This document shows positions 3,451-64,000 of a stretch of 64,000 bases of DNA, one piece after another (positions within the stretch are counted from its first letter, which is position 1; every line of letters begins with the position of its first letter). Source of the DNA: Pristiophorus japonicus (Eukaryota); contig NC_091999.1 of the NCBI RefSeq assembly GCF_044704955.1, positions 35,030,001-35,094,000 of the forward strand, given 5' to 3'. The notes beneath the pieces are model-generated. The model worked only from the letters and a program-made list of their open reading frames with translations, searched no databases and was not told where the DNA came from. A program made the position numbers and the translations under genes.

Positions 3451-3759
3451 AAATAGGAGCAGGAGTGGGCCAGATACTGCACGGTTATATGCAGTGTAAA
3501 GCTGCCTCTACACTGTCCCATCTAACACTGCCAGGATATGTACTGCACCGGTTAGATACGGAGTAAAGCTCCCTCGACACTGTCCCATTAAACACTCCCA
3601 GTGCAGGTACAGCATGGATTACATACAGAGTGAAGTTCCGTCTACACTGTCCCATCAAACACTGCCAGGGCATGTACAGTATCATTTACATGCAGGGTAA
3701 ACGTCTCTCTTAACAGCCAATCCAAAAATGCACAGGACAGGCACAACACAGATTAGGAA

Positions 3760-8400: not shown

Positions 8401-9910
8401 TCCTTTACTGTCCCTTGTAAAAAGTGTATCCTCCATGGGAGCTGGTCCAGCGTCCCAGCGGAGATGCATGAAGAGATCAAGCTGTTCCAGCAGAGTAAAG
8501 ACGAAATGTCCAGACAGACGGACTGTCTTTTGTGGGGTAATCACGTGGTTTTGCCCAAGAAAGGCAGGGAAATGTTCAAACGCGACCTATACTGTGCCCA
8601 CCAAGGCATAGTAATGATGAAAGCTATAGCCAGACACGATGTGTGGTGGCCCAATATAGACTCAGATTTGGAGTCTTGTGTGCGCCAATGCACCACTTGC
8701 TCGCATCTGAGCAGTCCACCCAGGGCACCCAAGTTTGTGGTCATGGCCCTCCAAACCGTGGTCTAGGATTCACGTTAAATTTGCTGGCCCATTTCTAGGC
8801 AAAATGTTCTTCGTTCTTGTGGATGTTTATTCTAACTGGATTGAGTGTGTAATAATGTCTGTAAGCACGTCCACTGCCATCCTCGAAAACCTACCAGCCA
8901 CGCACGGCCTGCCTGATGTCCTTGTCAGCGACAAAGGGCCATGCTTCACCAGCGCTGAATTCAAGGAATTCATGACACGCAATGGGATCAGGCACATCAC
9001 ATCTGCCCCGTTCAAGCCCGCATCCAATGGCCAGACAGAACGTGCAGTCCAAACCATCAAGCAAAGCTTGAAACACATGTCAAAAGGCTGCCTGCAGACC
9101 CATCTGTCCCGAGTCCTGCTCAGCCACTGCATCAGACACCATGCTCTCACCGGGGTTCCCCAGCTGAGCTGCTCCTGAAAAGGGTGCTCAAAACAAGGCT
9201 TTCTCTCGTTCACCCTGATCTCCATGATCAAGTCGAGGGCAGGAGGCATCAACAAAGCATGTTCTGTGGTCTCACAAATTTGTAACGCAATATTGATGTC
9301 AATGACCCTGTATTTGTACTCAACTATGGACATGGTCCCAAATAGCTTGCTGGCACTGTCATAACCAAAGAAGGGAGGAGGGTGTTTCAGGTCAAACTCG
9401 CAAATGGAATAACTTGCAGAAAGCATTTGGACCAAACTAAACTGCGATTCACAGACAGCCACAAGCAACCAAATTTGGCCCTCCGAAGCACACACAAGTT
9501 GCAACCAACATCATTGCAGACCACGAAGCTGAACTCATCATCCCCAGCAGCCCAGCAAGGTCAGCTGCGCAGCAGCCCAGCGAAGAATCAACCAACTCAC
9601 CTGCATCTGCATTTGTACTGAGATGATCGGCTCAGGAGCAAAAAGCCCCAGATCGTCTCAACTTGCAAATAAGTGTCCTATTGACTTTTGGAGGGAGTGA
9701 TATTATGTATGCAACCCTATGTAACCAGAATTCTACCACCACCACAGGGCGTATCTGTTGGAGTCCCAAGAGATCCCAGCGTCCCTTGGGAGCACTGTAT
9801 ATAAGCAGACCTTCCATGTTGTACGTGCACTCTGAAGTTAGAATAAAGACACAGGTCACACTTACTCACATCGACAGTACTCAATCATATTACTTTTTCT
9901 GGACTTAACA
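5440..9910 (+). mobile_element. Full-length decayed Ty3/Gypsy (Mag-like) LTR retrotransposon
   Basis: ~210-bp LTRs at 5440-5652 and 9701-9910; 5-bp TSD GGTTA (5435-5439, 9911-9915); PBS TGGCGACGAG (complementary to the tRNA-Ser(GCT) 3' end); PPT before the 3' LTR; gag, PR, RT (FQDDILI), RNaseH (LACDAS) and integrase (GQTERAVQT) fragments with stops and frameshifts. Confidence 0.95.
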
Positions 9911-14004: not shown

Positions 14005-14545
14005 GGTTAGATGCAGAGTAAAGCTCCCTCTACAATGTCTCACCAGACATTCCCAGGCAGATGCAGCTTTGGTTATTGAAGGTTAAATCTCCCTCTCGCC
14101 TGTCCCAAACACTCCCAGGGTAGGTACAACATTGGTTAGATACAGAATTCAACTCCCGCTGCACTGTCCCATCAAACACTCGCACAATAGGCGCAGCAGG
14201 GGTTAGTCAGACAGTAAAGCTCCCCATAGACTGATCCATCAAACACTCCCATCGCAGTTACGGCATGGGTTAAATATAGAGTACAACTCCTGCAACACTG
14301 ACCCATCAAATACTCCCAGCGCAGGTATAGCACGGGTTACATACAATGTAAAGCTCCCTGACACTATCCATCAAACACACCCAGGGGAGAAACAACACGG
14401 GTTAGATACTGAGTAAAGCTCACCCTGCATTCTCCTGTTAAACACTCCGTGGAAAGATGCAGCACGGAGTAGATAGAGAGAAAAACTTGCTCTCCACTAT
14501 CCAATCAATAACTGCTAGGGCAGGTACAGCACGGGTTAGACAGAA
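14005..14545. repeat. ~62-bp satellite (also at 3470-3755, 5370-5439, 9911-10145, 13251-13340 and 53430-54810)
   Basis: Unit like gggttagatacagagtaaagctccctctacactgtcccatcaaacactcccagggcaggtacagca. Confidence 0.9.
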
Positions 14546-33278: not shown

Positions 33279-34495
33279 CATAGACATAGAAAATAGGTGC
33301 AGGAGTAGGCCATTCGGCCCTTCCAGCCTGCACCGCCATTCAATGAGTTCATGACTGAACATGCAACTTCAGTACCCCATTCCTGCTTTCTCGCCATACC
33401 CCTTGATCCACCTAGTAGCAAGGACTTCATCTAACTCCTTTTTGAATATATTTAGTGAATTGGCCTCAAATACTTTCTGTGGTAGATAATTCCACAGGTT
33501 CACCACTCTCTGGGTGAAGAAGTTCCTCCTCATCTCGGTACTAAATGGCTTGCCCCTTATCCTGAGACTGTGTCACCTGGTTCTGGACTTTCCCAACATT
33601 GGGAGCATTCTTCCTGCATCTAACCTGTCTAACTCCGTCAGAATTTCAAACGTTTCTATGAGGTCCCCTCTCATTCTTCTGAACTCCAGTGAATACAAGC
33701 CCAGTTGACCCAGTTTTTCTTGATAGGTCAGTCCCGCCATCCCGGGAATTAATCTGGTGAACCTTCGCTGCACTCCCTCAATAGCAAGAATGTCCTTCCT
33801 CAGGTTAGTAGAACAAAACTGTACACAATACTCGTGGTGTGGCCTCACCAAGACCCTGTACAACTGTAGCAACACCTCCCTGCCCCTGTACTGAAATCCC
33901 CTCGCTATGAAGGCCAACATGCCCTTTGCTTTCTTAATTGCCTGCTGTACCTGCATGCCAATCTTCAATGACTGATGTACCATGATACCCAGGTATCGTT
34001 GCACCTCCCCTTTTCCTAATCTGTCTCCATTCAGATTGTAGTCTGTCTCTCTGTTTTTACCACCAAAGTGGATAACCTCACATTTATCCACATTATACTT
34101 CATCTGCCATGCATTTGCCCATTCATCCAACCTATCCAAGTCACTCTGCAGCCTCATAGCATCCTCCTCGCAGCTCACACTGCTACCCAACTTCGTGTAA
34201 TCCGCAAATTTGGAGATACTACATTTAATCCTCTCATCCAAATCATTAATGTACAATGTAAACAGCTGGGGCCCCAGCAAAGAATCTTGCGGTACCCCAC
34301 TAGTCACTGCATGCCATTCTGAAAAGTCCCCATTTAATCCTACTCGTTGCTTCCTGACTGACAACCAGTTCTCAATCCATGTCAGCATAGTACCCCCAAT
34401 CCCATGTGCTTTAATTTTGCACATATAATCTCTTGCGTGGGATTCCTGTTTGATGCCCTCCCCAACATCACTACTACTGTTTGGAGGTCAGTACA
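33279..34495 (-). mobile_element. CR1 3' fragment
   Basis: 283-aa RT ORF at 34424-33573; tail at 33279. Confidence 0.92.
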
Positions 34496-36850: not shown

Positions 36851-38620
36851 GAACATAAGAACATAAGAACATAAGAAATAGGAACAGGAGTAGACACTAC
36901 GGTCCCTCGAGCCTGCTCCATCTTTCAATAGGATCAGTGCTGATCTGTTCATGGATTCAGCTCCATTTTCCTCCCCGCTGCCCATAACCCCTTATCCCCT
37001 TATCGTTTAAGAAACCGTCTATTTCTGCCTTAAATTTAGTCAATGTCCCAGCTTCCAGAACTCTCTGAGGCAGCGATTTCCACAGATTTACAACCCTCTG
37101 AGAGAAGAGATTTCTGCTCATCTCTGTTTTAAATGGGCGGCCCCTGATTCTAAGATCATGCCCTCTAGTTCAGTGGAAACATGCTCGTTAAATCCATCCT
37201 GACAAGCCCCCTTAGATTATACTCTTCGATAAGATCACCTCTCATTCTTCTGAATTCCAATGAGTGGAGGCCCAACCTACTCGACCGTTCCTCATAACTC
37301 ACCCCCCTCATTCCCGGAATCAACCTAGTGAATCTTCTCTGAACTGCTTCCAAAGCAAATATATCCTTTCGTAAATATGGAAATCAAAACGTCACGTCGT
37401 ATTCCAGGTTTGGCCTCACCAATATCTTATATAGCATTAGCAAGACATCCCTGCTTTTATAGTCCATCCCCTTTGCAATAAAAGTCAAGATACCATTGGC
37501 CTTCCTGATCACTTGCTCTACCTGCATACTCTCCTTTTGTGTTTCATGCACAAATACCCCACGTCCTGCTGTGCTGCGGCATTTTACAATTTTTCTCCAT
37601 TTAAATAATAACGTGCTCTTCGATTTTTTTCTGCAAAAGTGCATGACCTCACACTTTCTAACATTATACTCCATCTGACAAATTTTGACCCACTCACTTA
37701 GCCTGTCTACGTCCTTTTGCAGATTTTTTGTGTCCTCCTCATACATTGCTTTTCCTCCCATCTTTGTATCGTCATCAAACTTGAATATGTTTCACTCAGT
37801 CCCTTCTTCCAAGTCGTTAATATAGATAGTAAATAGTTGGGGTCACAGCACTGATCCCTGCGGCGCCCCACTAGTTACTGGTTGCCAATGAGAGAATTAC
37901 CCATTTATCCCTACTCTCTGTTTATGTTCGTTAGCCACTTTTCTATCCATGCTACTATATTACCCCCAACCCCGTGAACGTTTATCTTGTGCATTAACCG
38001 TTTATGTCGCACCTTGTCAAATGCCTCCATAAGTCCAAATACACCACTTCCACTGTTTCTGGTTTATCTACCCTGTTCGTTACATCCTCAAAGAACTCCA
38101 TCAAATTTGTCAAACCTGACTTCCACTTCATAAGTCCATGCTGATTCTGCCAGACCGTATTTTGCTTTTCAAAATGTCCTGCTACAGCTTCTTTAATAAT
38201 GTACTCCAACATTTTCCCAACCACAGATTTTAGTCTAACTGATCTATAGTTTTCTGCTTTTTGTCTACTTCCTTTTTTAAATAGGCACATTACATTTGCA
38301 ATTTCCAAATCTCCTGGGATCTCCCCAGAATCCAGAGAATTTTGGTAAATTAAAACCAATACATCCACAATCCCTATCAATACATCTTTTAAGACCCGAG
38401 GATGCAATCCCTCATGTCTAGGGGATTTATCCGCCTTTATTCCCATTATCTTACTGAGTACCATCGCCTTAGTGATTGTGATTGTGTTAAGTTCCACCCG
38501 TCCTATTGGCCCTTTACTATCCACTGTCGGAATATTGCTAGCGTCCTCGACTGTAAAGACTAATACGAAATATTGTTCAGAGTTTCTGCTATCTCCATGT
38601 TCCCCATTACTAATTCCAGT
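36851..38620 (-). mobile_element. CR1 LINE fragment
   Basis: (AACATAAG)n tail at 36851; RT ORF remnants at 37165-38524. Confidence 0.92.
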
Positions 38621-39139
38621 AGGGCTAACTGCATTCTGGAAACAGGAGACAGAGTGCCAGTGTTAATGGGTGTTGCTGAGATTAGAGCAGGATTGCAGGT
38701 GGTTATTTTGCTCCTCGTTCTGTTTAAAACGTTTGGACTCGGGAGTCATTTAAAGAGGACAGTCCAAAACCAAAATTCATTGTACAAATGCTCTCCCCGA
38801 GAGGAGGGCTCCACTCGCATACTTAGCCTGGTCAAAACTAAAATGGTATTAGATCAGAATTGGATTTTCCCCGGCGATCACACACTCTGCCCCCACCTAG
38901 CACACCGGCGGAGAGGGCTCCATAATACCCATGGGCACCGTGCCGTGCCGGATCTTATCTGCCTGAAATACTGTCTAAAAGCTGTTCTACTGGAAAATTG
39001 AGAGAGTCGCGGTGTATAACAGAAAAAGGTCGAGAGAGCGTGTGTATGTCTGAAAACCACCGGGCTCTGGGAATGATTCCCCAAGGTTGTGCACGGTGTT
39101 TGTGTCAGATTTCGAACCAGTGATATCCCTGCCCTGCGA

Positions 39140-39712
39140 CTTTTGCTGGGACACTGTAGAGGGAGTTTTACTCTATATCTAACCCGTGCTGTACCTGCCC
39201 TGGGAGAGTTTGATTCGTCAGGTTAGAGGGAGCTTTACACTGTATCTAACCCGTGCTGTCCCTGCCCTGGGAGAGTTTTATGGGTCAGTGTAGAGGGAGC
39301 TTTACTCTGTATCTAAACCATGCTGTCCCTGCCCTGGGAGAGTTTGATGGGTCAGTGTAGAGGGAGCTTTACACTGTATCTAACCCGTGCTGTCCCTGCC
39401 CTGGGAGAGTTTGATGGATCAGTGTAGAGGGAGCTTTACTCTGTATCTAACCCATGCTTTCCCTGCCCTGGGAGAGTTTGATGGGTCAGTGTAGAGGGAG
39501 CATTACTCTATATCTAACCGTGCTCTCCCTGCACTTGGAATGTTTGATGGGTCGGTGTAGAGGGAGCTGTACTCTGTATCTAATGCGTGCTTTACCTGCC
39601 CTGTGAGTATTTGATTGGACAGTGTATAGGGGCATTTACCTTATATCAATCCCATGCTGTACCTGCCCTAGGAGATTTGTATGGGACACTGTAGAGGGAA
39701 ACTTACTCTGTC
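39140..39712. repeat. Same ~62-bp satellite in the opposite orientation, about 9 copies
   Basis: tgatgggtcagtgtagagggagctttactctgtatctaacccgtgctgtccctgccctgggagagtt repeated. Confidence 0.95.
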
Positions 39713-40908: not shown

Positions 40909-40924
40909 TCAGACCATCACTTGA
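40909..40924 (-). CDS. IGHM: IgM TM2 exon (altered junction)
   Basis: Polypyrimidine tract + ttacag, then TCAAGTGATGGTCTGA; resembles GTC-AAG-TGA (VK*) lacking its first G; candidate AATAAA at 40855-40850 and 40072-40067. Confidence 0.75.
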
Positions 40925-41040
40925 CTGTAATAGAGAGATAAAAGAATGAAGCTGAGGTTTAGTGCTCTAGGGCATTTATCTCAGGATTTGTCAAACGGCT
41001 TCCGTCAGATGGAAGTATGAGCGGATTGAATCTTCCCAAC

Positions 41041-41167
41041 TTCACCAGAGTGATGGCAGTGCTGTAGGAAATGCTCAGGAAGAACAGGATGATGAATGTG
41101 GAAGCGGTTGTCCAGATTTTGTCGCTCTCGTCCTCGTACTCTTCACTCCAGATGTGGTCTGAGGAAT
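41041..41167 (-). CDS. IGHM: IgM TM1 exon
   Basis: Acceptor ccgtag; DSSDHIWSEEYEDESDKIWTTASTFIILFFLSISYSTAITLV with CART motif; the only available GT donor (41040) is shifted by one base. Confidence 0.93.
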
Positions 41168-41859: not shown

Positions 41860-44800
41860 TCTGTGTCTCTGTGAGGGTGTTACTGTGTGTGTTTATGTAA
41901 TTGTGTGCGTGCTTTTCTCTCTGTGTGTACGTTTATGTGTAAAAGTGTGTGTGTGTGTGTGTTTATGTGTAACTGTGTTTGTTGATGTGTAAGTTTGTGC
42001 ACGTGTGCAGTTGTAAGATTGAGTATGCGTGTGTAAATCTTTGTGTTATTTTGTGTAAGTGGGCCTGTGTCTATATGGAAGCGTGTGTTTATCTGTAATT
42101 ATGAGTGTGCGATTTGGTGTAGTTGGGTGCAGGTAAGTTTATGTATAAGCACGTCCATGTCTAAGGGTTTGTGTATTGATGTTTGTGTGTGTATGTTTGT
42201 GTGCAAGTGTATTCACGTGTGTGCATTTGTGTAAGTGTATGTGTATCCTTGTGTATATGTATGTAAGTTCATGTGTGTGTTTGTCTGTAAGTGTAAGTGT
42301 GTGATTATGTCTGAGTGTTCGTTTATGTTTAGGTGTAAGTGTGTGCGTGTTTACATGTAACAGTGGGTTTGCAGGTAAGTTTGTGTGTGTGTGTTTTATG
42401 TTAGTGTGTGTGTGGATTGATGTGTGTGCTTATGTGTGTGTAAGTGTGTGTAAGTGTGTTTTTGTAAGTGAGTGTTTGGATTGATGTATGTGGAAGTGTG
42501 TGTTTGTAAGTGGGTGTTTGGATTGACGTGTGTGAAAATGTGTGTGTGTAAGTGTGTATAAGTGTGCTTTTTGTAAGTGTGTTTGGATTGATGTTTGTGT
42601 TTATGTGTGTTTAAGTGTGTGTACGTGTGTTTTGTGTAAGTGCATGTGTGGATTCATGTGTGCGTTTATGTGTTTGTAAATGTGTTTTGTGTAAGTGTGT
42701 ATAAGTGTTTGCACGTGTGTTTTGTGTAAGTGTGTGTGTGGATTGACGTGTGTGTTTATGTGTGTGTAAGTGTGTGTGTGTGTGTGTTTTGGGTAAGTGC
42801 GTGTGTGGATTGATGTGTATGTTTATGTGTGTGTAAGTGTGTTTTGCGTAAGTGCGTGTGTGGATTGATGTGTATGTTTATGTGTGAGTAAGTGTGTTTT
42901 GTGTAAGTGCGTGTGTGGATTGATGTGTGTGTTAATGTGTGTGTAAGTGTGTGTACCTGTGTTTTGTGTAAGTGTATGTGTGGATTGATGTGTCTGTGTA
43001 TGTGTGTGAAAGTGTGTTTTGTGTAAGTGCGTGTATAGATTGATGTGTCTATTTATGTGTGTGCAAGTGTGCTTTTTGTAAGTGTGTTTGGATTGGTATG
43101 TGTGTGTTTATGTGTGTGTAAGTGTGTTCCGTGTAAGTGTGTGTAAGTGTGCTTTGTGTAATTGTGTGTTTGGATTGATGTGTGTGTGTAAGTGTGTGTA
43201 AGTTTATTTTGTGTAAGTATATGTGTGGATTGATGTGAAGTAATTATGGGTGTGTAAGTGCGTGTCAGTATGTTTTGTGAAATGTGTGTGTGGATTGAAG
43301 TGTGTCTTTATGTGTGTGTAACTGTGTTTTGTGTAGTGTGTGTTTGGATTATTGTCTATTATTGCTAATGTTCGAAGTTTCAGAGAGTATCAATAACTGG
43401 ATTTTACAATGATGGTTTTCATTATATTCTAGTTATGTGTAATATTGTGTGTCAGAGTGTTAACGTATGTCTTTATATATAAGTCTATGTGTGTTTATGT
43501 GTAATTGTGCACTTACACAAAAACACAAACACTTACACAAAATCATCAACACACTTCCATGTGAACACACACAACCTCACTTTCATATTTATTCTCCCGA
43601 CTCTGTAAATGTGTTCTGTTTGAGGAATAATGTGACGTCAGCCGAAAGAATGCAACAATTCAACCGATGGGCCTCAGAAACATCAGGGACACTGTGAGAA
43701 ACCCGCAGAGGATTAATTCACCAGTTTAGATATGGCCCGTTAGAATTCAACATGTTCGTTTACAATTAACAGGGACAATTTCACCCCAACACTATTTAAA
43801 AATATTACGTGGAATAAATAGTTATTTCAGAATAGAATACTCATGTGGCAAGTTTAAAATCTTTACACCATGGGTTAGAATCTCACATTGTACACAGTGT
43901 GTTTATGTGTGTGTAAATGTGATTTTTGTAAGTGTGTATAAGTGTTTGTAAGTGTGTGTAAGTGTTTGCACCTGTGTTTTGTGTAAGTGTGTGTGTGGAT
44001 TGACGTGTGTGTTTATGTGTGTGTGCGTGTGTGGATTGATGTGTATGTTTGTGTGTGTAAGTGTGTTTTGTGTAAGTGCGTGTGTGGATTGATATGTGTA
44101 TTTATGTGTGCGTAAGTGTGTTTTGTGTAAGTGTGTCTGTGGATTGATGTGAGTATTTATGTGTGTGTAAGTGTGTTTGGTGTAAGTACGTGTGTGGATT
44201 GATGTGTGTGTTTATGTGTGTGAAAGTATCTTTTTTGTAATTGCGTGTATGGATTGATGTGTGTATTTATGTGTGTGTAAGTATATGCAAGTTTGGTTTT
44301 TGTAAGTGTGTGTTTGGATTGGTGTGTGTGTATTTATGTGTGTGTAAGTGTGTTTGGTGTAAGTGTGTGTGTGGATTGATGTGTGTGTTTATGTGTGTGA
44401 AAGTATGTTTTATGTAAGTGTGTGTATGGATTGATGTGTGTATTTATGTGTGTGTAAGTATATGCAAGTGTGGTTTTTGTAAGTGTGTGTTTGGATTGGT
44501 GTCTGTGTGTTTATGTGTGTGTAAGTGTGTTTGGTGTAAGTGTGTGTGTGGATTGATGTGTGTGTTTATGTGTGTGAAAGTATGTTTTATGTAAGTGCGT
44601 GTATGGATTGATGTGTGTATGTATGTGTGTGTAAGTGTGTGCAAGTGTGCATTTTGTAAGTGTGTGTTTGGATTGGTGTGTGTGTTTATGCGTGTGTAAG
44701 TGTGTTTTGTGTAAGTGTGCTTTGTGTAAGTGTGTGTGTGGATTGACGTGTGTTTTTATGTGTGTAAGTGTGTGTAACTGTGTTTTGTGTAGTGTGTGTT

Positions 44801-45360
44801 TGGATTGATATCTATTATTGCTACTGTTCGAAGTTTCAGAGAGTATCAATAACTGGATTTTACAAAGATGGTTTTCATTATATTCTAGTTATGTATAATA
44901 TTATGTGTCAGAGTGTTAATGTATGTCTTTATATGTAAGTCTATGTGTGTTTATGTGTAATTGTGCACTTACACAAAAACACACACACTTACACAAAGTC
45001 ATCAACATACTTCCATGTGAACACACACAAACTCACTTTCACATTTATTCTCCCTGGCTCTGTGTAAATGTGTTCTGTTTGAGGAATAATGTGACGTCAG
45101 CTGAAAGAATGCAACGATTCAACCGATGGGCCTCAGAAACATCAGGGACACAACTGTGAGAAACCCGCAGTGGATTCAATCACCAGTTTAGATATGGCCC
45201 ATTAGAATTCAACATGTTTGTTTACAATTAACAGGGACTGCTGCACCCCCAACCCTATTTAAAAATATTACGTGGAATAAATAGTTATTTCAGAATATAA
45301 TACTCATGTGGCAAATTTAAAATATTTAGACCATGGTTTAGAATCTCACATTGTACTGAT
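41860..45360. repeat. TG-rich degenerate satellite with a ~1.45-kb tandem duplication in the CH4-TM1 intron
   Basis: (gtgtaagtgt..ggattgat)n arrays; the unique block 43345-43895 is repeated at 44800-45355. Confidence 0.9.
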
Positions 45361-46202: not shown

Positions 46203-46594
46203 TCATTGACAAGAATTGACGGTGTCCATCAGAACAAGGGAAATATTCACAAAACTGGGTTTACCGCTGGATTTATTGACGATTCTGTTGGTGATCTTCA
46301 AGGGGATCGCTTCATGTCCCACCACACAGGAGTAAGAAGCGCCGCTGGCCCACTCCTCGGCTGCAATGGATAGCAGGCTGTACATGAAGAAGGAGCTGCT
46401 GCCGTTCTCCGCCATCACCTCGGTGTTCTTGTAGTTGCCGGAATCCACCGGCTTGTCATTGACGGTCCATTTGACGAAGATCTCTCGGGGGGAGAAACCT
46501 CTCACTAAGCAGGTGAGGCTGACCAACCTCGGAGCGGAGACTTCTTCTACCGAGGGCAGGAGGACAGTCACGGCCGGTTCCCGCCGATCTTTCG
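46203..46594 (-). CDS. IGHM: IgM CH4 exon plus secretory tailpiece
   Basis: [14 protein letters not shown]...[18 protein letters not shown]...[11 protein letters not shown]...[20 protein letters not shown]; internal G|GTAAA donor at 46264 for the membrane form; tailpiece NIS sequon and penultimate Cys intact. Confidence 0.97.
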
Positions 46595-47507: not shown

Positions 47508-47816
47508 CCTTTTCCTTGTGGATGGAATCTCTGATCGGAGTCGGCATATCCTGATGGCTCACCACGCAGTAGAACTTATCCCCACTCAGCCAGTCTTGTG
47601 TCGAGATGTTTAAGTTGCTGATCACGCTGTTGGGATCCTCTCCCGGTTGGACGGCAATCTCTGATTTCAAAGCCTCCTTTTCTCGGGTCCAGGACACGGT
47701 GAGCCCATAAGGAGCGTCAGACACGACGCAGGTTAAGGTCACCGTCGCCTCCAGTAAGACCTGTTCCAGTGACGGTGGGCGAAGAGTGATTTTTGAATCA
47801 CTGCATGGGACATCCA
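47508..47816 (-). CDS. IGHM: IgM CH3 exon
   Basis: 309-nt phase-1 exon: [32 protein letters not shown]...[19 protein letters not shown]; GTGAGC donor. Confidence 0.96.
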
Positions 47817-49768: not shown

Positions 49769-50086
49769 CCTGAGATCTGCTGAAGTTACGGCTTTGCGTG
49801 ACCCCTTCATGAGTGACTTGGCAGGTGTAGACCGAGCCGGTGAACCATTCCTCGGCGGGGACTGTCAGCCGACTGGCCGTCGAGAAGTTCCCGTTCACCT
49901 CAAAGACGGGAGAGGTGACGAAGCCCGAATCCAGGAGTTGTCCACTCTTCAGCCAATTCACGGTCAGTGACTTTGGCCGGAAATCGATGATTGAACACAC
50001 GGCGCTTGCATATCTGCTGGTGGTGATTTGTTCAGTGGAACTCAGCGTGAGGAGAACAGTTGGAGGACCGATGTCCGGTTCAGGAT
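49769..50086 (-). CDS. IGHM: IgM CH2 exon
   Basis: 318-nt phase-1 exon: [13 protein letters not shown]...[18 protein letters not shown]...[13 protein letters not shown]...RSQ; GTAAGA donor. Confidence 0.96.
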
Positions 50087-50204: not shown

Positions 50205-50655
50205 GAGAGCAGAACTGTGCACAGTATTCTCAGTGTAATATGCAGACCAGAACTGTGCATAATATTCTAAGTGCGATATGAGGTCCAGAACCATGCACAG
50301 TATTCTAAGCATGATATGGAGACCACAACTTTATGCCGTATTCTAAGTATGAGATCGAAACCAGAACTTTAAAGAATATTCTAACTGTGATATGGAGACC
50401 GGAACTGTGCATAATATTCTTAGTATGATATGGAGACCAGAACTTTAGACACTAATCTAAGTATGAGATGGAAACCAGAATTGTGACCAATATTCTAAAT
50501 GTGATAAGGAGACTAGAACTGTGCTCAGTATTCTAAGTATTATGTGGAAATCATAACTGTACACAATACTCTAAGTGTGATTTGGAGACGAGAACTGTAC
50601 ACAGCATTCTAAGTATGATAGGGAGAGCAGAACTGTACACAGTACTCTAGGTGTT
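50205..50655. repeat. 38-bp minisatellite, about 12 copies, in the CH1-CH2 intron
   Basis: agaactgtgcacagtattctaagtatgatatggagacc; agaac recurs at 50211, 50249, 50287... Confidence 0.9.
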
Positions 50656-50732: not shown

Positions 50733-51032
50733 CTGGCATTGTGATGGCCCAGACCGACACACCACGTCGAACCTCACAGAAGATTGTGCTACTCCCCACA
50801 TCTGACTTGGTGATGGTTAACTGGCTGCTCTGGGTGTAGATTCCTTTCTTGTTGAACACTGACGGGTAGGTCTTCAATGCAGTGGTGATGGGATCTTTAT
50901 CTTTCTTCCAGGAAAGGCTGGTGATGTCGGGGGAGTAGTCCATCGCCAAACAGCCGTATGTGATGGAGCCATCGGTGCTGGGTTGTTCACAGGAGGAGAG
51001 CAGGGCGTAGAGATTGGGGGGAAACGGTGTTA
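50733..51032 (-). CDS. IGHM: IgM CH1 exon
   Basis: AG/GT-bounded 300-nt phase-1 exon: [17 protein letters not shown]...[19 protein letters not shown]...TYPSV...IFCEVRRG; early Cys for light-chain linkage retained. Confidence 0.96.
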
Positions 51033-52710: not shown

Positions 52711-55700
52711 CTACACGAGTCAGTGTGAATAGTGCTTCTAGATTTAATGGAAGGAAACGCTTCATATTTTGGACACCTCTACCAGATCAATTTTTATTGT
52801 TCGTTATAATGAAAGAGGATATTTAAAATAAAGGGATCTTATAAATCTGACGCAAATTAGTCAATCGCATGCTGTTATAAAGGCTTAAAGTTCATTGCGA
52901 ATGATGACTTATTGCAGGTTGACTCTATATCTTTAAATGTTTCACAGAATTGCAGCTCAGTGACTGTGCACCTTGTGTTGTGACCCAGGCCAATAGCTGC
53001 ATCTCTCATAGTTTGTCCCTACCTTTAACCTGCTCAAGATGAATTGAACAACATAATGTTTCTAAACACGAGGTCCTCATGACTGTTATTTGAAGCGGGA
53101 GTCTCGATATCCTCCATTTAAATTGTGAAAATAACTTACAGCCTCCCAACAGATCAGAACAGCCGCTGCTATCTGGAGCGTTATTCACTTCCTGAAACGG
53201 TTTGTTCTGAAAGTGAGCTGAGGATCAGGCCAATCGTGTTCAATAGAAATCTGATGCTCAGAATGTTCAAACATGAATAACTCATTAAAAATTTGGCATT
53301 TTTTCAGAAAGAATATAAACATCAATGAATGTGCGTTGTTTAATCTGGGCAATCGGACGATTTATTGTTTATATCTGGCACGAGTAGTTTATCTGCTATT
53401 TGTTAGTGGCACATAACGGTGCCTTGAACATTGCCTGACCAAGCACTCTCAGGTCAGATACAGCACGATACAAGAGCAAAGCTCCCGCTATGCTGTCGTG
53501 TGGGTCAGGCCAGGTATAGCAAGGGTTACACACAGAGTAATATGTTATCTGTACTATCCCGTCAAACATTCCCAGCTCAAGTACTGCAGAGATGTGCTAC
53601 GAAATGTCTCCCCATAAAATGCATTATCAAATTGACCGATTATACTCAGTACAATTATCACACGTACAAAGAAAAGCTTCCCATACACTGCCCCTTTAAA
53701 GCACACCAGCTCACCTATAGCTCTGATTAAATAGAAGATCAATCTATATTGAAGGACCCAATTAAGCTCCACGTCCTTGTAAATAAAAGGTTAAATGTTG
53801 ATTAAAGCTATCTCTGCAATGTCCCATCAAGCAATGCCAGATAAGGTAAAGTATGGGTTAGTTGCAGAGTAAAGCTCCTTCATCACTGTCATATCAAACA
53901 CTCCCAGTGTAGGTACGGCACGAGTTAGATAAACAGTAGATTTCCCTCCACACTGCCAATTAAACACATTCAGGACAGGTCCAGTAAGGCTTGGATAAAA
54001 AATAAAGCTTCCTCTACAATGTCCCATCAAACACTCCCAATACAGGTACAGTGTAAAGCTCCCTCTAGAATGTCCCATTAAACATTCCCAGGGCAGGTAC
54101 AGCGTGGGTAGATACAGACTAAATCTCCCTCTACAGTGTCCCATCAAACAGTCCCAGTGCAGGTACAAAATTGCCAAAATAAATTGGAGCATCCATCTGA
54201 TCAGACGAGGCACTGCTTTCCTGAAACTGTTTGTTCTGAAAGTAAACTTAGGATCAGACCAATCTCATTCAATAATTAACTGATGCTCAACTGTATAACC
54301 ATTACTAATTCAATATCGTATTAGTTAGATGCAGATTGAGGTTTCTTCAATTTGTTTTCGAAAATCACTCGAATCAGATACAGGACAGATTCGATAGAGT
54401 AAATCTCCGTCTTCACTGGTCTGTCTGGCGCTGTAAGGTCATGTAAAGCAAAGGATGAATGCATATTAAACTGCACTACCCTGTAATACGGGTCAAACAT
54501 AGCAAGGTTTAGATTCCGAGTAAAATTATTTCTGCACTGTGCCATCAATCCACACAGGGCAGATACAGCATCGGTCAAGATACAGAGTTGAGCTCCCTCT
54601 ACATTGTCCCATCAAACACGCCCAGAACAGGTACAGCATGGGTCAGCACAGAGTAACACTCCCTCTACATTGTCCCATCAAACACTCCCAGGGCACGTAC
54701 AGCATGGGCTAGATACAGAGTAAAGCTCCTTCTGCACTGTCCCATCAAACACTTCCAGCGTAGGTACAACCGGGTTAGAAACTGATTAAAGCTTCTTCTA
54801 CTTTCCCCCCGTGGTGTTTCGGAACTGCTCCTTCTGACTGTCAAAAGCTGGGTTACTGATCTCATTTCAGCGGCGACTCCTCAACCTTAAAGTCAATCTT
54901 TTACGTTTCTCACATATACCAGTTTCTTAAATAACTGAGTTAAATGACACTCCCCGCAATACACGATCACAATCCAGAAGTTTTGCAACCCGTCAGGAGG
55001 ACTTATGATTCTCACACAGTGAGCAGGCGCACAGGAACAGAACTGACACAAACGGTGCAACAACGGTGCTCCAGTGAGAGAGACCAGTTCTATCTGTTAA
55101 TTTCAATGAAGCTGTTTGATTTCTAATTTATTTCTTGTCAATTTCCAACCACCTCAACTCTGCAGATTTTTTGAAATTAAACTGATCTTTATTTGAGAAA
55201 CTATTCAACATCCAGCCATTCCTCCCTCTCGGTCGACTATCTTGTAAACCGTGTAAAAATTAATTTCCCTGAAAATAAGTATCTGGAAATAATTCTCATT
55301 CCATGGAAAGTGCTGCGCGTTAAACGGGACTAGCTAACAGGGTAAGAATGTCACAATCCAGAGACATATACATTGAAACCTGATCACCCACTGATTTGAC
55401 ATATTTGCAATAGTAAATATAACCTGTAAAATCATCGAGGCAAAATCAACTAAAATATTAAGCGATAGCTTATCGAACTCAGCACAGCCGAGTTATACAT
55501 GCATTATCTTCTAAATTAATTTAGGAATTAATTAAACATTCTCTCCAACCCTTGTGTTAGTGTAATAACTGTAATGTTGACCAGTATGCAATGCAATTGC
55601 AAGAGATCATTTATGTTTAATGAATTAGAACGAATATTACATTTTAAGTTTGTGTTCATGTTAGCTGATTATTGGAAATACTCTGAGTACCTGTCTGGCA

Positions 55701-58332
55701 CTTCCTCCTCAGAAGCACACGTACCTGGAACTTTTGAAATTAACTTAATGTGCTTGAATTTCAGTCTTACTGATACAATTAATGAATAATAATTTAAAAA
55801 TCTTTTCTGCCTGGCAACTTGTGATATATTAAGGTTTACTTAACTTACCATAACAATTCATCAACAGTAAAATATTAAGCAGCATATTAATACATAAATA
55901 CAATCAGAAAAATAAATTATTTTTACTTAACTCAAATCACATTTGACTAATTGACGATAATTACGCAGTTCTACTTCTGTCCCGTTCTCTACCGATACAT
56001 TTTTAAATTCTACATATTCTGACATAACAAAAACTGCGTCTATTTTCAGAGTACATTGCACATGATGGATTGAGGAGTGGACTATTTTAAATAGTTCACT
56101 GTCCGGCCCGGGTCACAAGTCCGATGTGCTGTAAACCACGTGTTTACTAAACTGGACTCTCGAGCTGAAATATTCTCCACAATCTTAACTTCCCAAAAAT
56201 GGTTTTCTTAATTAAAACCAGTTTGCAGTCAGTAGCAGAACTTCTGCTATTTAATAACACAGACAATCATTTACAGTTCACTCCCATTATTCACACAATG
56301 CCCCCAAATTAATTATTAAATACATTCTGCTATTTCTTGAAACTAATTTCCAGAATGGTTAGTGTAAAACTGTAGGATAACAAATCATTCAGGCCATCTG
56401 CGACACTGAACCTGAATGAGCAAATGGAGGAGAGACTTTGTTCATCAATTTAATATTAATAATAATTAACATAATTCTCAGATATGACCTGTGCTTTGTC
56501 TACCGTTCTATCCCTTATATAGCACCGCTTTGGGAGAAAGGAAGTTGTGTTAAATTCTAAACAAGATGAACATTTTTTAAGTAAATTAATCTGCTTGAAT
56601 TTCAATGGATTATTTGCCTATCTCCAGCCTATGCAGTCTTGAATTTGAATATAATCACATGAATAATTCTTTGACTGCCGGTGACGCCTGACTCACAGCC
56701 TCTGATCTTGCAAACTGTTTAAGATTAGTTTAGTGATAATTCTATCGGTATCAAACAAAACACAATAGTGATTCAATAACAAATTTCGGTTGCACAGTAA
56801 GAATTTCATATTAAATTGACAAAATGCAATTTACAACACGGCTTTGAGTTATAATTAAAGACACTGCCAATCATCTCTGTAAACAGGAGGTAAAAAGTAA
56901 CTGAACTCCCGACTCAAACTGAACACACGGTGGAATCAATATGTTGTCAGTGAACTAATTGCAGGCATAATTAATAATTGTATCCAGCCTCTAAAAGTTT
57001 CTGCTCCTCTTAATGGAGCCCAGTGTACAGCAGGATTTTGGAAGGCAAATAATATTAAGAAAATTATATTGATATTATAACATATTTTAATAACATTGGA
57101 AGATATTATCGCATTATAATATTATAATCGGTTTGTTAATCGTAATTTATTTCAGCTACAACCTGAATAATTGCTAATTATATAGCTGGTAATTACAGTT
57201 ACGTTTCACTCAGTAAATATCAGCATCGTAAACATAAATTTATAGTTGAATATATAATTATCACCAATAATTGTTATGTTAAAATATATTTCAATGATTT
57301 CTGATTCCTAAAACCTTCCTGTTCTCTGCCTACAATCTGCTTTCAAACAGTTTCAAACACATATCTTGTTTGTATTCGATCAGGAACCTGCTGCTGCCCG
57401 CTGTCACCGATATTAAACATTGTAGAAACGCCAAATAGTTTCACAAATTTTTGGTATTCTGAATAACACCGGCACAAACTCTCCTCAGCAGATCAATACG
57501 AAATCACATCACTGAGGGGCGGACAGAACCTTTCATGAACAGATCCTTCATTCTCTAAACCATTTCAGCAGAATTAAATGTATCATTGCAAAAAGTCTCT
57601 TTACAGAATCACCGAAGCCGCCTAAAACTAATATAACTAATGATTGAATTCAACTGAAATATAAAATAATGACAGCAGAATTGTGATTTGATGGATCATG
57701 TAAAATACATTAATGTTAATATTATAGCATATTTTAATAATAATGGGTGATATTACTACATCATTATAATGTTAGTAATATTAATTTAAATCAGGTCCAT
57801 CTGGAAATGTGTTAATTTTTCAGTCCTTAATTACAGCAACACTTCACGTATTGAATCTGTGCATTCGGGAACATTCGGTCAGTAGATGACAAATGTAATT
57901 TTCACTAAAATCTTTAAATTCCTTAAGAATATATATTGAGCGCTAAGATTTATGTTATGTGTTTAAAATGTTCTTTCAAAAATATTTAAACACAATGTTT
58001 GTATTCGATCAGAAAAATTGCAGCAATCATAGCTCACCGAGATTAAACATTGCAGAAGTGTCAAACAGTGTAACAACTTTAAAGCATTTAACGTAACTCA
58101 AGCACAGAAACTCGTTAGCAGATAAACACCAAATCACTTCAACAACAACTTATGTGGAGAAACAGTTGAATTCTATAATCACTTTGTAGCAGAATTACAT
58201 AAAACATTGAAAAATCTCAATAGAGAACCCACCGAACCCAAGTTTCAGTGAACGAAATAAGTATTAAAATAAAGAGAAATGTAAAATAAAGGCACAAATA
58301 CAACAGTTGCAGAATGTATGAATGTTCTTTAC

Positions 58333-58397
58333 CTGCAATCACCGTCACCATGGTCCCTGGTCCCCAGTAGCCCATGGCGTCCTTATTCCCGTGGTCC
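58333..58397 (-). CDS. IGHJ: Fused D-J segment (DHGNKDAMGYWGPGTMVTVIA), apparently germline-joined
   Basis: 65 nt from heptamer to phase-1 GTAAAG donor (58332); WGxG J motif; open in the J frame; no separate J 22/23-RSS seen. Confidence 0.88.
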
Positions 58398-58425
58398 CAC
58401 AGTGATAGGAACCCGTACAAATATT
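58398..58425 (+). promoter_or_regulatory. 12-spacer RSS 5' of the D/J segment (D1-type position)
   Basis: CACAGTG (58398-58404) + 12-nt spacer ATAGGAACCCGT + ACAAATATT (58417-58425); faces the V 23-RSS in deletional orientation. Confidence 0.9.
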
Positions 58426-58830
58426 GCATTCAGTCCCTGCTCAGTACTGATTCTCAACATTCATTCGAAATACACATGCACTTCAAATACAAATTCGCTT
58501 CTTATCAAGTTTAGAATTTAGCCAACAGTTTGTAGAACAAATAGAAGGAGAACACAGTTCTCACCAGCTCCCTGCAGGTATCAGGTACAGTGAATCGAGC
58601 ATCATGTCCAGCTGGGCAATTGTTGACACTGTTAACATTAAACAGGAGCACAACAGAAACCTCCCTCTGTACATTGGTTACAGTGTTATATTTTCACCAT
58701 TGAATTATCAGTGTCTTAGTTTTGTAAGAAGCGGTTTGTGGTCTGGTTTTGAACAATGCCGTTATCACTGCATTTGACACAATTACTGACCGTCAGGTTA
58801 TGATGGACGTTATTGAATTCCCCCTCGATC

Positions 58831-58869
58831 TGTTCTTGTATGGGTCCAGCCCTGGTTCCTCTCGCTGTG
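58831..58869 (-). promoter_or_regulatory. VH 23-spacer recombination signal sequence
   Basis: Heptamer CACAGCG (58869-58863), 23-nt spacer, nonamer ACAAGAACA (58839-58831), immediately after YYCAR-CAC. Confidence 0.93.
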
Positions 58870-59174
58870 GTGCCTTGCACAGTAATAGATGGCGGTGTCT
58901 TCGCTCCGCAGTTTCTTCATGTCCAACGCGAAGATGTTGCTTGAAGTATCTTTGGACACAGTAAATCGGCCCTCAGTCCCCGGGGTGTAATGCTTGTCCG
59001 ATGAACTGTAATATCTAATCAGCCACTCCAGCCCCTGTCCGGGAACGTGGCGGACCCAGTACATGTAGCTGCCACCAAGATCTAAGCCGCTGGTTTTACA
59101 GGTCAGTCTCAGGGAGCCCCCGGGAATCCTGGTCTCTGCCTCGGGCTGAGTCAACACCATATCCGACTGGACAC
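58870..59174 (-). CDS. IGHV: Immunoglobulin VH exon, open and unrearranged
   Basis: Acceptor tttctacag; [12 protein letters not shown]...LTCKTSG...[12 protein letters not shown]...RFTVSKD...[10 protein letters not shown] with canonical Cys/Trp/YYC; no stops. Confidence 0.97.
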
Positions 59175-59299: not shown

Positions 59300-59345
59300 G
59301 GGAAAAGAAAGCCAGCAACAGACTGAGAGAAATAGCCGACCTCAT
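59300..59345 (-). CDS. IGHV: IgM heavy chain leader exon (MRSAISLSLLLAFFS-R)
   Basis: ATG at 59345; hydrophobic signal peptide; phase-1 GTGAGT donor at 59299; splices in frame to the V exon (R-VQS). Confidence 0.93.
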
Positions 59346-59769: not shown

Positions 59770-59950
59770 TATAAAAGGCTCAGCAGTCCGGGGAGCGTCG
59801 GGAGACGCGGGAGTCGAGAGAGGCAGCGGCCTATAAAAGGCTCAGCAGTCCGGGGAGCGTCGAGAGACGCGGGAGTCGAGAGAGGCAGCGGCCTATAAAA
59901 GGCTCAGCAGTCCGGGGAGCGTCGAGAGAGGCGGGAGTCGAGAGAGGCGT
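59770..59950 (+). repeat. ~62-bp tandem repeats (about 3 copies) in the CR1 5'UTR, each with TATAAAA
   Basis: ataaaaggctcagcagtccggggagcgtcg recurs at ~59771, 59833 and 59895. Confidence 0.9.
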
Positions 59951-60128
59951 ACTTGTGCAGCTCCAGCTGAGAGAAGTCAAAAAAGAAGTAGAAAGAAATC
60001 AAAAGGTGACGTCACAGCCAACGTGGTAAGTGATTGGCTGCTGATTGGTGAGTAGTTTTTCTTTTTCTTTTTAGTCAGTAACTTTTAACATTGTTGTCGG
60101 CAATTTAAGTGTATCTAAGGGTTAAGTC

Positions 60129-61076
60129 ATGGCAGGACAGCTCGGTCACGTGATATGCTCCTCCTGTACCATGTGGGAACACGGGGACAACACCAGTGTC
60201 CCTGACGACTACATGTGCGGAAAGTGTGTCCACCTCCGGCTACTGACGGTCCGCGTTGCGGAGTTGGAGCTGAAGGTGGATTCACTCTGGAGCATCCACG
60301 ATGCTGAGAATGACGTGAGTATCACGTGTAGCGAGTTGGTCTTACCGCAGGAGAAGGGTCCACAGCCAGCGAGGGAATGGAAGACCAGCAGGAAGAGTAG
60401 TGCAAGGAAGGTAGTGCAGGGGTCCCCTGTGGTCATCCCACTGCAAAACAGATACACTGCTTTGAGTGCTGTTGAGGGGGATGACTCATCAGGAGCGGGC
60501 AGCAGCAGCCAAGTTCATGGCACCGTGGCTGGCTCTGTTGCACAGGAGGGCAGGAAAAAGAGTGGGCGAGTGATAGTGATAGGGGATTCAATTGTAAGGG
60601 GAATAGATAGGCGTTTCTGCGGTCGCAACCGAGACTCCAGGATGGTATGTTGCCTCCCTGGTGCAAGGGTCAAGGATGTCTCGGAGCGGGTGCAGGACAT
60701 TCTAAAAAGGGAGGGAGAACAGCCAGTTGTCGTGGTGCACGTTGGTACCAAAGACACAGGTAAAAAAAGGGATGAGTTCCTACGAAATGAACTTAAGAAG
60801 CTAGGAGCTAAATTAAAAAGTAGGACCTCAAAAGTAGTAATCTCGGGATTGCTACCAGTGCCACGTGCTAGTCAGAGTAGGAATCGCAGGATAGCTCAGA
60901 TGAATACGTGGCTTGAGCAATGGTGCAGCAGGGAGGGATTCAAATTCCTGGGGCATTGGAACCGGTTCTGGGGGAGGTGGGACCAGGACAAACCGGACGG
61001 TCTGCACCTGGCCAGAATCGGAACCAATGTCCTCGGGGGAGTGTTTGCTAGTGCTGTTGGGGAGGAGTTCAACTAA
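60129..61076 (+). CDS. CR1 ORF1p (Cys-rich zinc finger, coiled coil, SGNH/GDSL esterase)
   Basis: 315-aa ORF with CxxC...CxxC, LELKV heptads, IGDSIVRG, HVGTKD and DGLHL motifs. Confidence 0.9.
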   Translation: MAGQLGHVICSSCTMWEHGDNTSVPDDYMCGKCVHLRLLTVRVAELELKVDSLWSIHDAENDVSITCSELVLPQEKGPQPAREWKTSRKSSARKVVQGSPVVIPLQNRYTALSAVEGDDSSGAGSSSQVHGTVAGSVAQEGRKKSGRVIVIGDSIVRGIDRRFCGRNRDSRMVCCLPGARVKDVSERVQDILKREGEQPVVVVHVGTKDTGKKRDEFLRNELKKLGAKLKSRTSKVVISGLLPVPRASQSRNRRIAQMNTWLEQWCSREGFKFLGHWNRFWGRWDQDKPDGLHLARIGTNVLGGVFASAVGEEFN

Positions 61077-64000
61077 TATGGCAGGGGGATGGGAACCAAT
61101 GCAGGGAAATAGAGGGAAACAAAAAGGAGGCAAAAACATATGACAGAAAGGAGATGAGGAAAAGTGGAGGGCAGAGAAACCCAAGGCAAAGAACAAAAAG
61201 GGCCATTGTACAGCAAAATTCTAAAAGGACAGAGGGTGTTAAAAAAACAAGCCTAAAGGCTTTGTGTCCTAATGCAAGGAGTATCCGCAATAAGGTGGAT
61301 GAATTAACTGTGCAAATAGATGTTAACAAATATGATGTGATTGGGATTACGGAGACGTGGCTCCAGGATGATCAGGGCTGGGAACTCAACATCCAGGGGT
61401 ATTCAACATTCAGGAAGGATAGAATAAAAGAAAAAGGAGGTGGGGTAGCATTGCTGGTTAAGGAGGAGATTAAGGCAATAGGTAGGAAGGACATTAGCTT
61501 GGATGATGTGGAATCTATATGTGTAGAGCTGCAGAACACTAAAGGGCAAAAAACGTTAGTGGGAGTTGTGTACAGACCTCCAAACAGTAGTAGTGATGTT
61601 GCGGAGGCATCAAACATGAAATTAGGGGTGCGTGCAATAAAGGTGCAGCAGTTATAATGGGTGACTTTAATATGCACATAGATTGGGCTAACCAAACTGG
61701 AAGCAATACGGTGGAGAAGGATTTTCTGGAGTGCATAAGGGATGTTTTTTTAGACCAATATGTCGAAGAGCCAACTAGGGGGGAGGCCATCTTAGACTGG
61801 GTGTTATGTAATGAGAGAGGGTTAATTAGCAATCTCGTTGTGCGAGGCCCCTTGGGGAAGAGTGACCATAATATGGTGGAATTCTGCATTGGGATGGAGA
61901 ATAAAACAGTTAATTCAGAGACCATGGGTCCAGAACTTAAAGAAGGCTAACTTTGAAGGTATGAGGCGTGAATTGGCTGGGATGGATTGGCGAATGATAC
62001 TTAAGGGGTTGACTGTGGATGGGCAATGGCAGACATTTAGAGACCGCATGGATGAACTACAACAATTGTACATTCCTGTCTGGCATAAAAATAAAAAAGG
62101 GAAGGTGGCTCAACCGTGGCTATCAAGGGAAATCAGGGATAGTATTAAAGCCAAGGAAGTGGCATACAAATTGGCCAGAAATAGCAGCGAATCTGGGGAC
62201 TGGGAGAAATTTAGAACTCAGCAGAGGAGGACAAAGGGTTTGATTAGGGCAGGGAAAATGGAGTATGAGAAGAAGCTTGCAGGGAACATTAAGACGGATT
62301 GCAAAAGATTCTATAGATATGTAAAGAGAAAAAGGTTCATAAAGACAAACGTAGGTCCCCTACAGTCAGAATCAGGGGAAGTCATAACGGGGAACAAAGA
62401 AATGGCGGACCAATTGAACAAGTACTTTGGTTCGGTATTCACGAAGGAGGACACGAACAACCTTCCGGTTATAAAAGGGGTCGGGGAGTGTAGTAAGGAG
62501 GAGGATCTGAGGGAAATCCTTATTAGCCGTCAAATTGTGTTGGGGAAATTGATGGGATGGAAGGCCGATAAATCCCCAGGGCCTGATGGACTGCATCCCA
62601 GAGTACTTAAGGAGGTGGCCTTGGAAATAGTGGATGCGTTGACAGTCATTTTCCAACATTCCATTGACTCTGGATCAGTTCCTATGGAGTGGAGGGTAGC
62701 CAATGTAACCCCACTTTTTAAAAAAGGAAGGAAAGAGAAAAAAGGGAATTATAGACCGGTCAGTCTGACATCGGTAGTGGGTAAAATGATGGAATCAATT
62801 ATTAAGGATGTCACAGCAGTGCATTTGGAAAGAGGTGACATAATAGGTCCAAGTCAGCATGGATTTGTGAAAGGGAAATCATGCTTGACAAATCTTCTGG
62901 AATTTTTTGAGGATGTTTCCAGTAGAGTGGATAAGGGAGAACCAGTTGATGTGGTATATTTGGACTTTCAGAAGGCGTTCGACAAGGTCCCACACAAGAG
63001 ATTGATGCGCAAAGTTAGAGCACATGGGATTGGGGGTAGTGTACTGACATGGATTGAGAACTGGTTGTCAGACAGGAAACAAAGAGTCGGAGTAAATGGG
63101 TACTTTTCAGAATGGCAGGCAGTGACTAGTGGGGGAACGCAAGGTTCTGTGCTGGGGCCCCAGCTGTTTACACTGTACATTAATGATTTAGATGAGGGGA
63201 TTAAATGTAGTATCTCCAAATTTGCGGATGACACTGAGTTGGATGGCAGTGTGAGCTGCGAGGAGGATGCTGTGAGGCTGGAGAGCGACTTGGATATGTT
63301 AGGTGAGTGGGCAAATGCATGGCAGATGAAGTATAATGTGGATAAATGTGAGGTTATCCACTTTGGTGGTAAAAACAGAGAGACAGACTATTATCTGAAG
63401 GGTGACAGATTAGGAAAAGGGGAGGTGCAAAGGACCTGGGTGTCATGGTACATCAGTCATTGAAGGTTGGCATGCAGGTGCAGCAGGCGGTTAAGAAAGC
63501 AAATGGCATGTTGGCCTTCATAGCAAGGGGATTTGAGTACAGGGGCAGGGAGGTGTTGCTACAGTTGTACAGGGCATTGGTGAGGCCACACCTGGAGTAT
63601 TGTGTACAGTTTTGGTCTCCTAACCTGAGAAAGGACATTCTTGCTATTGAGGGAGTGCAGCGACGGTTCACCAAACTGATTCCCGGGATGGCGGGACTGA
63701 CCTATCAAGAAAGACTGGATCAACTGGGCTTGTATTCACTGGAGTTCAGAAGAATGAGAGGGGACCTCATAGAAACATTTAAAATTCTGACGGGGTTAGA
63801 CAGTTTAGATGCAGGAAGAATGTTCCCAATGTTGGGGAAGTCCATAACCAGAGGTCACAGTCTAAGGATAAGGGGTACGCCATTTAGGACCGAGATGCGG
63901 AGGAACTTCTTCACCCAGAGAGTGGTGAACCTGTGGAATTCTCTACCACAGAAAGTTATTGAGGCCAATTCACTAAATATATTCAAAAAGGAGATCGATG

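Follow-up and report, generated by a model that had tools for sequence, protein, structure and literature searches.

Heavy-chain genes of cartilaginous fishes are organized in clusters with the order V-D1-D2-J, and many of these clusters are joined in the germline as VD-J, VD-DJ, or VDJ (PMC5192425, PMC4279169, PMC3308330, PMC7916673). The germline-joined immunoglobulin genes of sharks have been attributed to recombination in germ cells (PMC2193156). In the miniloci of the nurse shark, approximately 400 bp lie between the segments, and the distance to Cmu1 is 6.3–6.8 kb (PMC2435157). A V-DDJ configuration has been described as a somatic intermediate in the thymocytes and B cells of the nurse shark (Malecek et al. 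2008, PMC2435157).

The locus described here is a shark-type (cartilaginous-fish) IgM minilocus, which is located on the minus strand of a 64-kb window (the whole stretch of DNA that was analyzed) and is complete. With a probability of roughly 80%, we consider this minilocus to be partly joined in the germline, with a D segment, or D1 and a trimmed D2, fused to JH and with V left free. The germline-joined clusters of the horned shark, skates, and nurse shark (IgM1gj), with their VD-J, VD-DJ, or VDJ forms, resemble it in having an inherited fusion, RSSs that are paired as 12/23, and a CDR3 that is partly hard-wired (PMC5192425, PMC4279169, PMC2193156). V is among the joined segments in the germline-joined clusters covered by reviews, whereas V is free in this locus and only the 3' elements are fused. 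Likewise, germline joins between D2 and J are known only within VD-DJ, whereas the join observed here is accompanied by an open V.

The somatic V-DDJ of the nurse shark has the same configuration as this locus, namely a V that is still open and a DDJ that bears a 5' 12-RSS, with a single intersegment remaining, and its existence indicates that RAG readily makes such a product (PMC2435157). It is formed somatically in thymocytes or B cells, whereas the cluster described here was found at germline depth in whole-genome reads. The DJH of mammalian pro-B cells is likewise a DJ with a 5' 12-RSS that awaits a VH 23-RSS with one deletion left; it is somatic and transient, and many Vs can join it, whereas the DJ in this locus is inherited and faces only one V, at a distance of 472 bp. 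In the light-chain V-J clusters of cartilaginous fishes, assembly likewise takes a single 12/23 deletion, which connects the one V of a cluster to its one J-bearing element, but the elements in this locus are a heavy-chain V, J, and Cmu, and its J-bearing exon contains fixed residues derived from D. A full-text search for a germline V-DDJ, V-DJ, or DJ-joined cluster retrieved somatic V-DDJ only; primary descriptions lay outside this search, and an earlier report is possible.

Organization of the IgM minilocus

The leader exon (59300–59345, minus strand) was identified by reading splice sites and open reading frames. It encodes MRSAISLSLLLAFFS plus 1 nt, is followed by a GTGAGT donor and a short intron leading to VH, and is almost the same as the leader of Heterodontus HV01. 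The VH exon (58870–59174, minus strand) was predicted to be open, and it indeed contains no stop codon and matches the Pfam V-set domain with an E value of 1e-15. Its last residues are TGTGCAAGGCAC, with YYCARH at the end, and its protein sequence is 72% identical to IgM VH of Chiloscyllium, Heterodontus, and Scyliorhinus, the best named matches being galeomorph sharks.

An RSS scan located the V 23-RSS directly after YYCARH (58831–58869, minus strand), and it consists of the heptamer CACAGCG, a spacer of 23 nt, and the nonamer ACAAGAACA. A leader and a VH with a 3' RSS of the 22–23-nt spacer class, both features of membership in this type of cluster, are present in the locus. The 23-RSS had been described as good; its heptamer (58863–58869) is imperfect, with C in place of the consensus T at the sixth position. 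The reads contain a paralogous V, seen in a contig with a loose end at 58877, that has a CACAGTG heptamer and a closely similar spacer. CACAGCG is a possible weakening mutation of the sole V RSS in the cluster.

The constant region comprises four open exons on the minus strand, all of phase 1-1 and all recognized as C1-set domains. Cmu1 (50733–51032) is in frame with the J donor and lies 7.3 kb downstream of J, and it is followed by Cmu2 (49769–50086), Cmu3 (47508–47816), and Cmu4 with a secretory tailpiece (46203–46594; E value of 1e-21). Residues 4–121 of Cmu4, tailpiece included, were aligned with PDB chains named immunoglobulin heavy constant mu, and the best named matches (76–84%) came from galeomorph sharks. 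An internal donor for the membrane form is located just after 46265. The locus shows a further feature of membership in having a single JH with a splice donor and, several kb 3' of it, four Cmu exons of which the last carries the mu tailpiece. The intersegment of 405 bp between V and the J-bearing exon and the 7.3 kb to Cmu1 match the spacings of the nurse-shark miniloci (PMC2435157).

The TM1 and TM2 exons (40917–41167, minus strand) were assigned by reading open reading frames and splice sites, and they have an unusual junction. The open reading frame of TM1, from 41167, is intact (IWTTASTF...TLVK, ...IWTTASTFIILFFLSISYSTAITLVK). TM1 ends with ...AITLVK (AAG) and is followed by TTGGGA, which contains no GT donor, and TM2 starts with TCAAGTGA after its acceptor; the usual KVK cytoplasmic end thus cannot be made by canonical splicing. 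Two alternative donors in TM1, CTG|GTGAAG and GTGAA|GTTGGG, would yield other tails.

Several repeats accompany these exons. A diverged tandem repeat of approximately 630–650 bp (57057–58141; 72–75% identity), which contains no copy of J, lies immediately downstream of the J exon, in the J-Cmu1 intron, and a 38-bp tandem repeat with 11.7 copies (50205–50649) is found in the Cmu1–Cmu2 intron. Between Cmu4 and TM1, TG-rich tandem arrays with units of 55–65 bp extend over approximately 2.3 kb (42489–44809); their GC skew is 0.35–0.57, and they are CA-rich on the gene strand. Upstream of the leader, a LINE-type retroelement (59770–63463, plus strand) with an ORF1-like frame of 315 aa and RT-bearing frames of up to 541 aa is directed away from the IgM gene. 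Its start is 425 bp upstream of the leader ATG, and it is preceded by a 62-bp tandem repeat (2.9 copies, 98% identity). Positions 1–40000 of the window are occupied mostly by retroelement fragments, with RT frames at 11173–13097, 33573–34424, and 37994–38524 and integrase-like frames at 7391–9178, and satellite-like arrays with a 67-bp unit are found at 3475–3701, 14106–14421, 39115–39711, and 54518–54801. One V-end motif and one J motif were counted in the window, and the rest of it showed no additional V, J, or C exon.

The fused DJ exon and the V-to-DJ interval

A 12-RSS facing V was detected in the RSS scan at 58398–58425 (minus strand), with the nonamer AATATTTGT, a 12-nt spacer, and a perfect CACTGTG heptamer. 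The original prediction of a perfect heptamer with a 12-nt spacer approximately 470 bp past V, abutting a 65-nt segment in frame to the J splice donor, was confirmed in each of these details. The DJ exon (58333–58397, minus strand) directly abuts this RSS and, in the frame of J and with no stop, reads DHGNKDAMGYWGPGTMVTVIA up to a phase-1 GT donor at 58332–58331, the J motif WGPGTMVTV standing immediately before the donor. The open reading frame containing the exon (58220–58429) was used as a protein query; one candidate shared words with it, and none scored.

RSS-like motifs of this quality were found 15 times in the window, compared to 5.4 expected from Markov-simulated sequence. Such motifs prove little by themselves, but the exact placement and orientation of the two RSSs, at the end of V and at the start of the J-bearing exon, are beyond chance. 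The V 23-RSS and the DJ 12-RSS stand in deletional orientation and are compatible with the 12/23 rule.

The V-to-DJ intersegment (58426–58830, minus strand) is 405 nt long and contains no D and no RSS. In the canonical layout, two free Ds with flanking RSSs would be expected between V and J, and none was present at 58426–58830. The scan for further RSSs between the two described above, conducted in both orientations with up to 6 mismatches allowed, yielded nothing better than 6 mismatches, compared to 3 for each of the real RSSs. The D of a VD-joined paralog was not matched at any position of the window when up to 3 mismatches were allowed, and no internal repeat hinting at a decayed D was detected in the gap. 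RSS scanning, D matching, and the repeat search therefore all failed to recover a remnant D1 in the V-DJ gap, in agreement with the earlier claim that no free D with paired RSSs exists there. As no free Ds are located between V and J, the cluster is a joined variant.

Germline status of the join

The join was examined in whole-genome short reads assembled as Logan contigs (2.6–3.8 Gb of contigs per run). Parts of the window are covered by four DNA runs from a single sample of unstated tissue in a single study, with X2 and X3 being one and the same data set. The sample is possibly from the same specimen as the assembly source. The depth of unique flanks in these runs was 42–63.

A 278-nt contig, found in X2/X3 and in X4, spans 58255–58532 and holds the complete 65-nt exon with its 12-RSS, together with some J-Cmu intron sequence on one side and 130 bp of flank upstream. 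It was covered at a depth of 38–51, compared to 42–57 for the unique flank at 57900–58057, which corresponds to a single copy. The contig differs from the window at three positions (58319, 58328, and 58436), none of which falls in the DJ exon or the RSS, and its 12-RSS is identical to that of the window. The same join is therefore present on a second copy that is approximately 1% diverged, which may come from the other haplotype, from another individual, or from a very close paralog. Whichever of these applies, an identical join on a diverged copy indicates that the join is inherited. Across the rest of the V-to-DJ interval, short-read contigs overlap one another and are in agreement with the assembly, with no single molecule spanning V to DJ.

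These data bear on the possibility that the layout is not an inherited state but a somatic V-DDJ intermediate from a lymphocyte or the product of an assembly collapse, either of which had been named in advance as fatal to the prediction. Nurse-shark lymphocytes do form V-DDJ as a somatic intermediate, prominently so at Group 5 genes (PMC2435157). However, a lymphocyte clone would make up a minute fraction of the depth, whereas the junction contig was recovered at full single-copy depth in two independent short-read runs, and the copy that it represents differs from the assembly at three flanking sites. For a collapse, no homology able to drive one was found. The single-copy depth together with the three flanking differences establishes the join as inherited, neither somatic nor a collapse, and we regard the somatic or artifactual explanation as hardly credible. 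The segments are contiguous in whole-genome reads at single-copy depth, as is characteristic of a germline-joined gene.

Composition of the junction

The segments that contribute to the 65-nt exon were delimited by comparison with paralogous sequences in the reads, for which the references for D and J are 30-letter loose ends of single contigs and not full paralogous clusters. One paralogous contig tracks J from the intron to 58380 and then continues on the minus strand as ...AGTATTTGACACAACGTGTCT-CACTGTG-TT-ACGCCATGGGCTACTGG. It represents an unjoined JH of 50 nt, with the heptamer 2 nt from ACGCC, and upstream of 58380, it shares nothing with the DJ exon. As the paralogous J reads CACTGTG-TT-ACGCC, the J part of the exon starts at 58380. 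It extends from 58333 to 58380 on the minus strand (up to the GT at 58332), reads AMGYWGPGTMVTVIA, and was recognized by its homology to the paralogous unjoined J and by its J motif. The homology breaks exactly at the coding end of J, where 2 nt have been trimmed, and this is the mark of a coding join.

A second contig follows a V to TGTGCAAGG and continues with AAGGACTACGGGAGTGGGT-CACGGTG, representing a VD-joined paralog in which D still has its RSS heptamer. The 17 nt of the exon that lie between the 12-RSS and the J part (58381–58397, minus strand) match this D at 12 of 17 positions, a value reached by 53 of 20000 composition-preserving shuffles (p of approximately 0.003), and at 11 of 13 positions over GGAC(C/T)ACGGGA(A/G)T. 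The first 13 of these nucleotides are D-like, and the last 4 may be N/P nucleotides or a remnant of D2. The exon is thus best partitioned into a D-like 13-mer whose end next to the RSS is necessarily intact, the 4 unassigned nt AAGG, and J lacking 2 nt. End trimming, extra nucleotides, and a homology break at the coding ends, all expected of a germline-joined gene, are seen here on short loose ends of single contigs. The original prediction had proposed an alignment to paralogous clusters for this partition; on the loose ends of the read contigs, the D-like 13 nt, AAGG, and J were separated, and N nucleotides and D2 were not separable.

If no D-J join existed, the 65-nt exon would be a normal long JH of the species with its own 12-RSS, and a nonamer-like motif at 12-nt spacing on the paralogous J in the reads is in favor of this. 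The paralogous J is, however, short (50 nt), its heptamer stands 2 nt from ACGCC, and the sequence upstream of it is unrelated. It follows from the break at 58380 that the extra 17 nt are not part of J, and they resemble the D that adjoins V in another cluster. A normal long JH is accordingly an improbable explanation of the exon. It had been stated beforehand that the prediction would fall if every JH in the species were this long and carried a 12-RSS: the length of the paralogous J speaks for the join, and the spacer, with the nonamer-like AGTATTTGA at 12 nt, leaves that part of the statement standing.

As to the number of Ds, the fusion to J may comprise either one D, or D1 and a heavily trimmed D2, and only 4 nt separate the D-like 13-mer from J. 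The canonical layout in the horned shark is V with a 23-RSS, D1 with 12- and 22-RSSs, D2 with two 12-RSSs, and J with a 22–23-RSS. Since this layout forbids a D1-to-J join, D2 would be needed, and it would have been trimmed to 4 nt or fewer. The prediction that RAG joined D1(-D2)-J in a germ cell agrees with the fusion of D to J in the germline, to which the read depth, the homology break, and the match to D all point; its two-D part corresponds to these 4 nt only.

The RSS of the paralogous unjoined J offers another route. The nonamer-like AGTATTTGA is located exactly 12 nt 5' of its heptamer and is identical at 7 of 9 positions to the nonamer of the 12-RSS in this locus, whereas the spacers share 2 of 12 positions, and the 21 nt of paralog flank that are visible end short of the position of a nonamer at 22–23 nt. 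The normal JH RSS of the species may itself have a 12-nt spacer, in a TCR-delta-like manner. With a functional 12-RSS on JH, some clusters may have the form V23 / 12-D-22 / 12-J, for which one D-J event would be enough. A 12-nt spacer on JH would change which Ds were consumed and not the D-J fusion itself.

Predicted assembly and integrity of the cluster

We propose that a coding join of the V(D)J type fused D, or D1 and a trimmed D2, to JH in the germ line of an ancestor. The fused exon would have kept only the 5' 12-RSS of D, and VH with its 23-RSS would have stayed unjoined, one normal intersegment (405 bp) upstream. To assemble this heavy chain, a lymphocyte would need only one RAG-mediated 12/23 deletion of 472 bp from V to DJ. 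The germline would dictate approximately 10 residues of CDR3 (DHGNKDAMGY), leaving the V-D border as the only source of junctional diversity. Any transcript of the joined gene would carry the inherited 3' stretch ...DHGNKDAMGYWGPG. The last codon of V is complete and the DJ exon requires two additional bases, so a blunt join would be out of frame and run into TAA. About one-third of the joins would be in frame, giving a CDR3 of approximately 13–14 residues, of which approximately 10 would be inherited.

This reading of the locus as the source of a semi-invariant antibody assembled in one step is tentative and is weakened by several features of the locus. The join could be real and of germline origin in a cluster that is a decaying relic making no antibody, in which case the semi-invariant heavy chain would exist as no protein. 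The V heptamer is CACAGCG, compared to CACAGTG in the paralog; TM1 has no GT after ...VK and TM2 starts with TCAAGTGA, so that the KVK end lacks its usual encoding; the 750 bp 5' of the ATG contain no octamer, even with one mismatch allowed; and the LINE lies 425 bp 5' of the leader ATG. All of these favor decay. The leader, V, DJ, and the four Cmu exons are nevertheless open with matching splice phases, and the copy with 1% divergence in its flanks carries an unchanged DJ exon and RSS. We consider a relic to be a serious prospect, with a likelihood somewhat below one-half.

Implications for shark antibody genes

Beyond this locus, the V-DJ layout may define a family of IgM clusters that assemble in one step, like light chains, with a largely fixed CDR3; alternatively, a TCR-delta-like architecture (V23 / 12-D-23 / 12-J) may have taken the place of the two-D layout for some of the IgM repertoire. 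The TCR-delta-like reading is hinted at by the nonamer that possibly stands at 12-nt spacing on the paralogous unjoined J. Either generalization is unlikely at present.

The partly joined minilocus adds one more permutation to a peculiarity of shark antibody genes that is already in textbooks, and it is not a new mechanism. D1-D2 and D2-J joins are each known in the germline, and only their combination with an open V seems to be unlisted; the advance over current knowledge is incremental and not conceptual. Germline-joined antibody genes are standing evidence that the V(D)J recombinase acts in shark germ cells and reshapes antigen-receptor loci over evolutionary time. A join confined to the 3' elements suggests that germline events follow the same unordered pathway as shark lymphocytes, in which V-DDJ is known. 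In its RSS logic, the resulting heavy-chain locus resembles a light chain or the mammalian DJ intermediate, and if it is expressed, it would provide antibodies with a mostly inherited CDR3.
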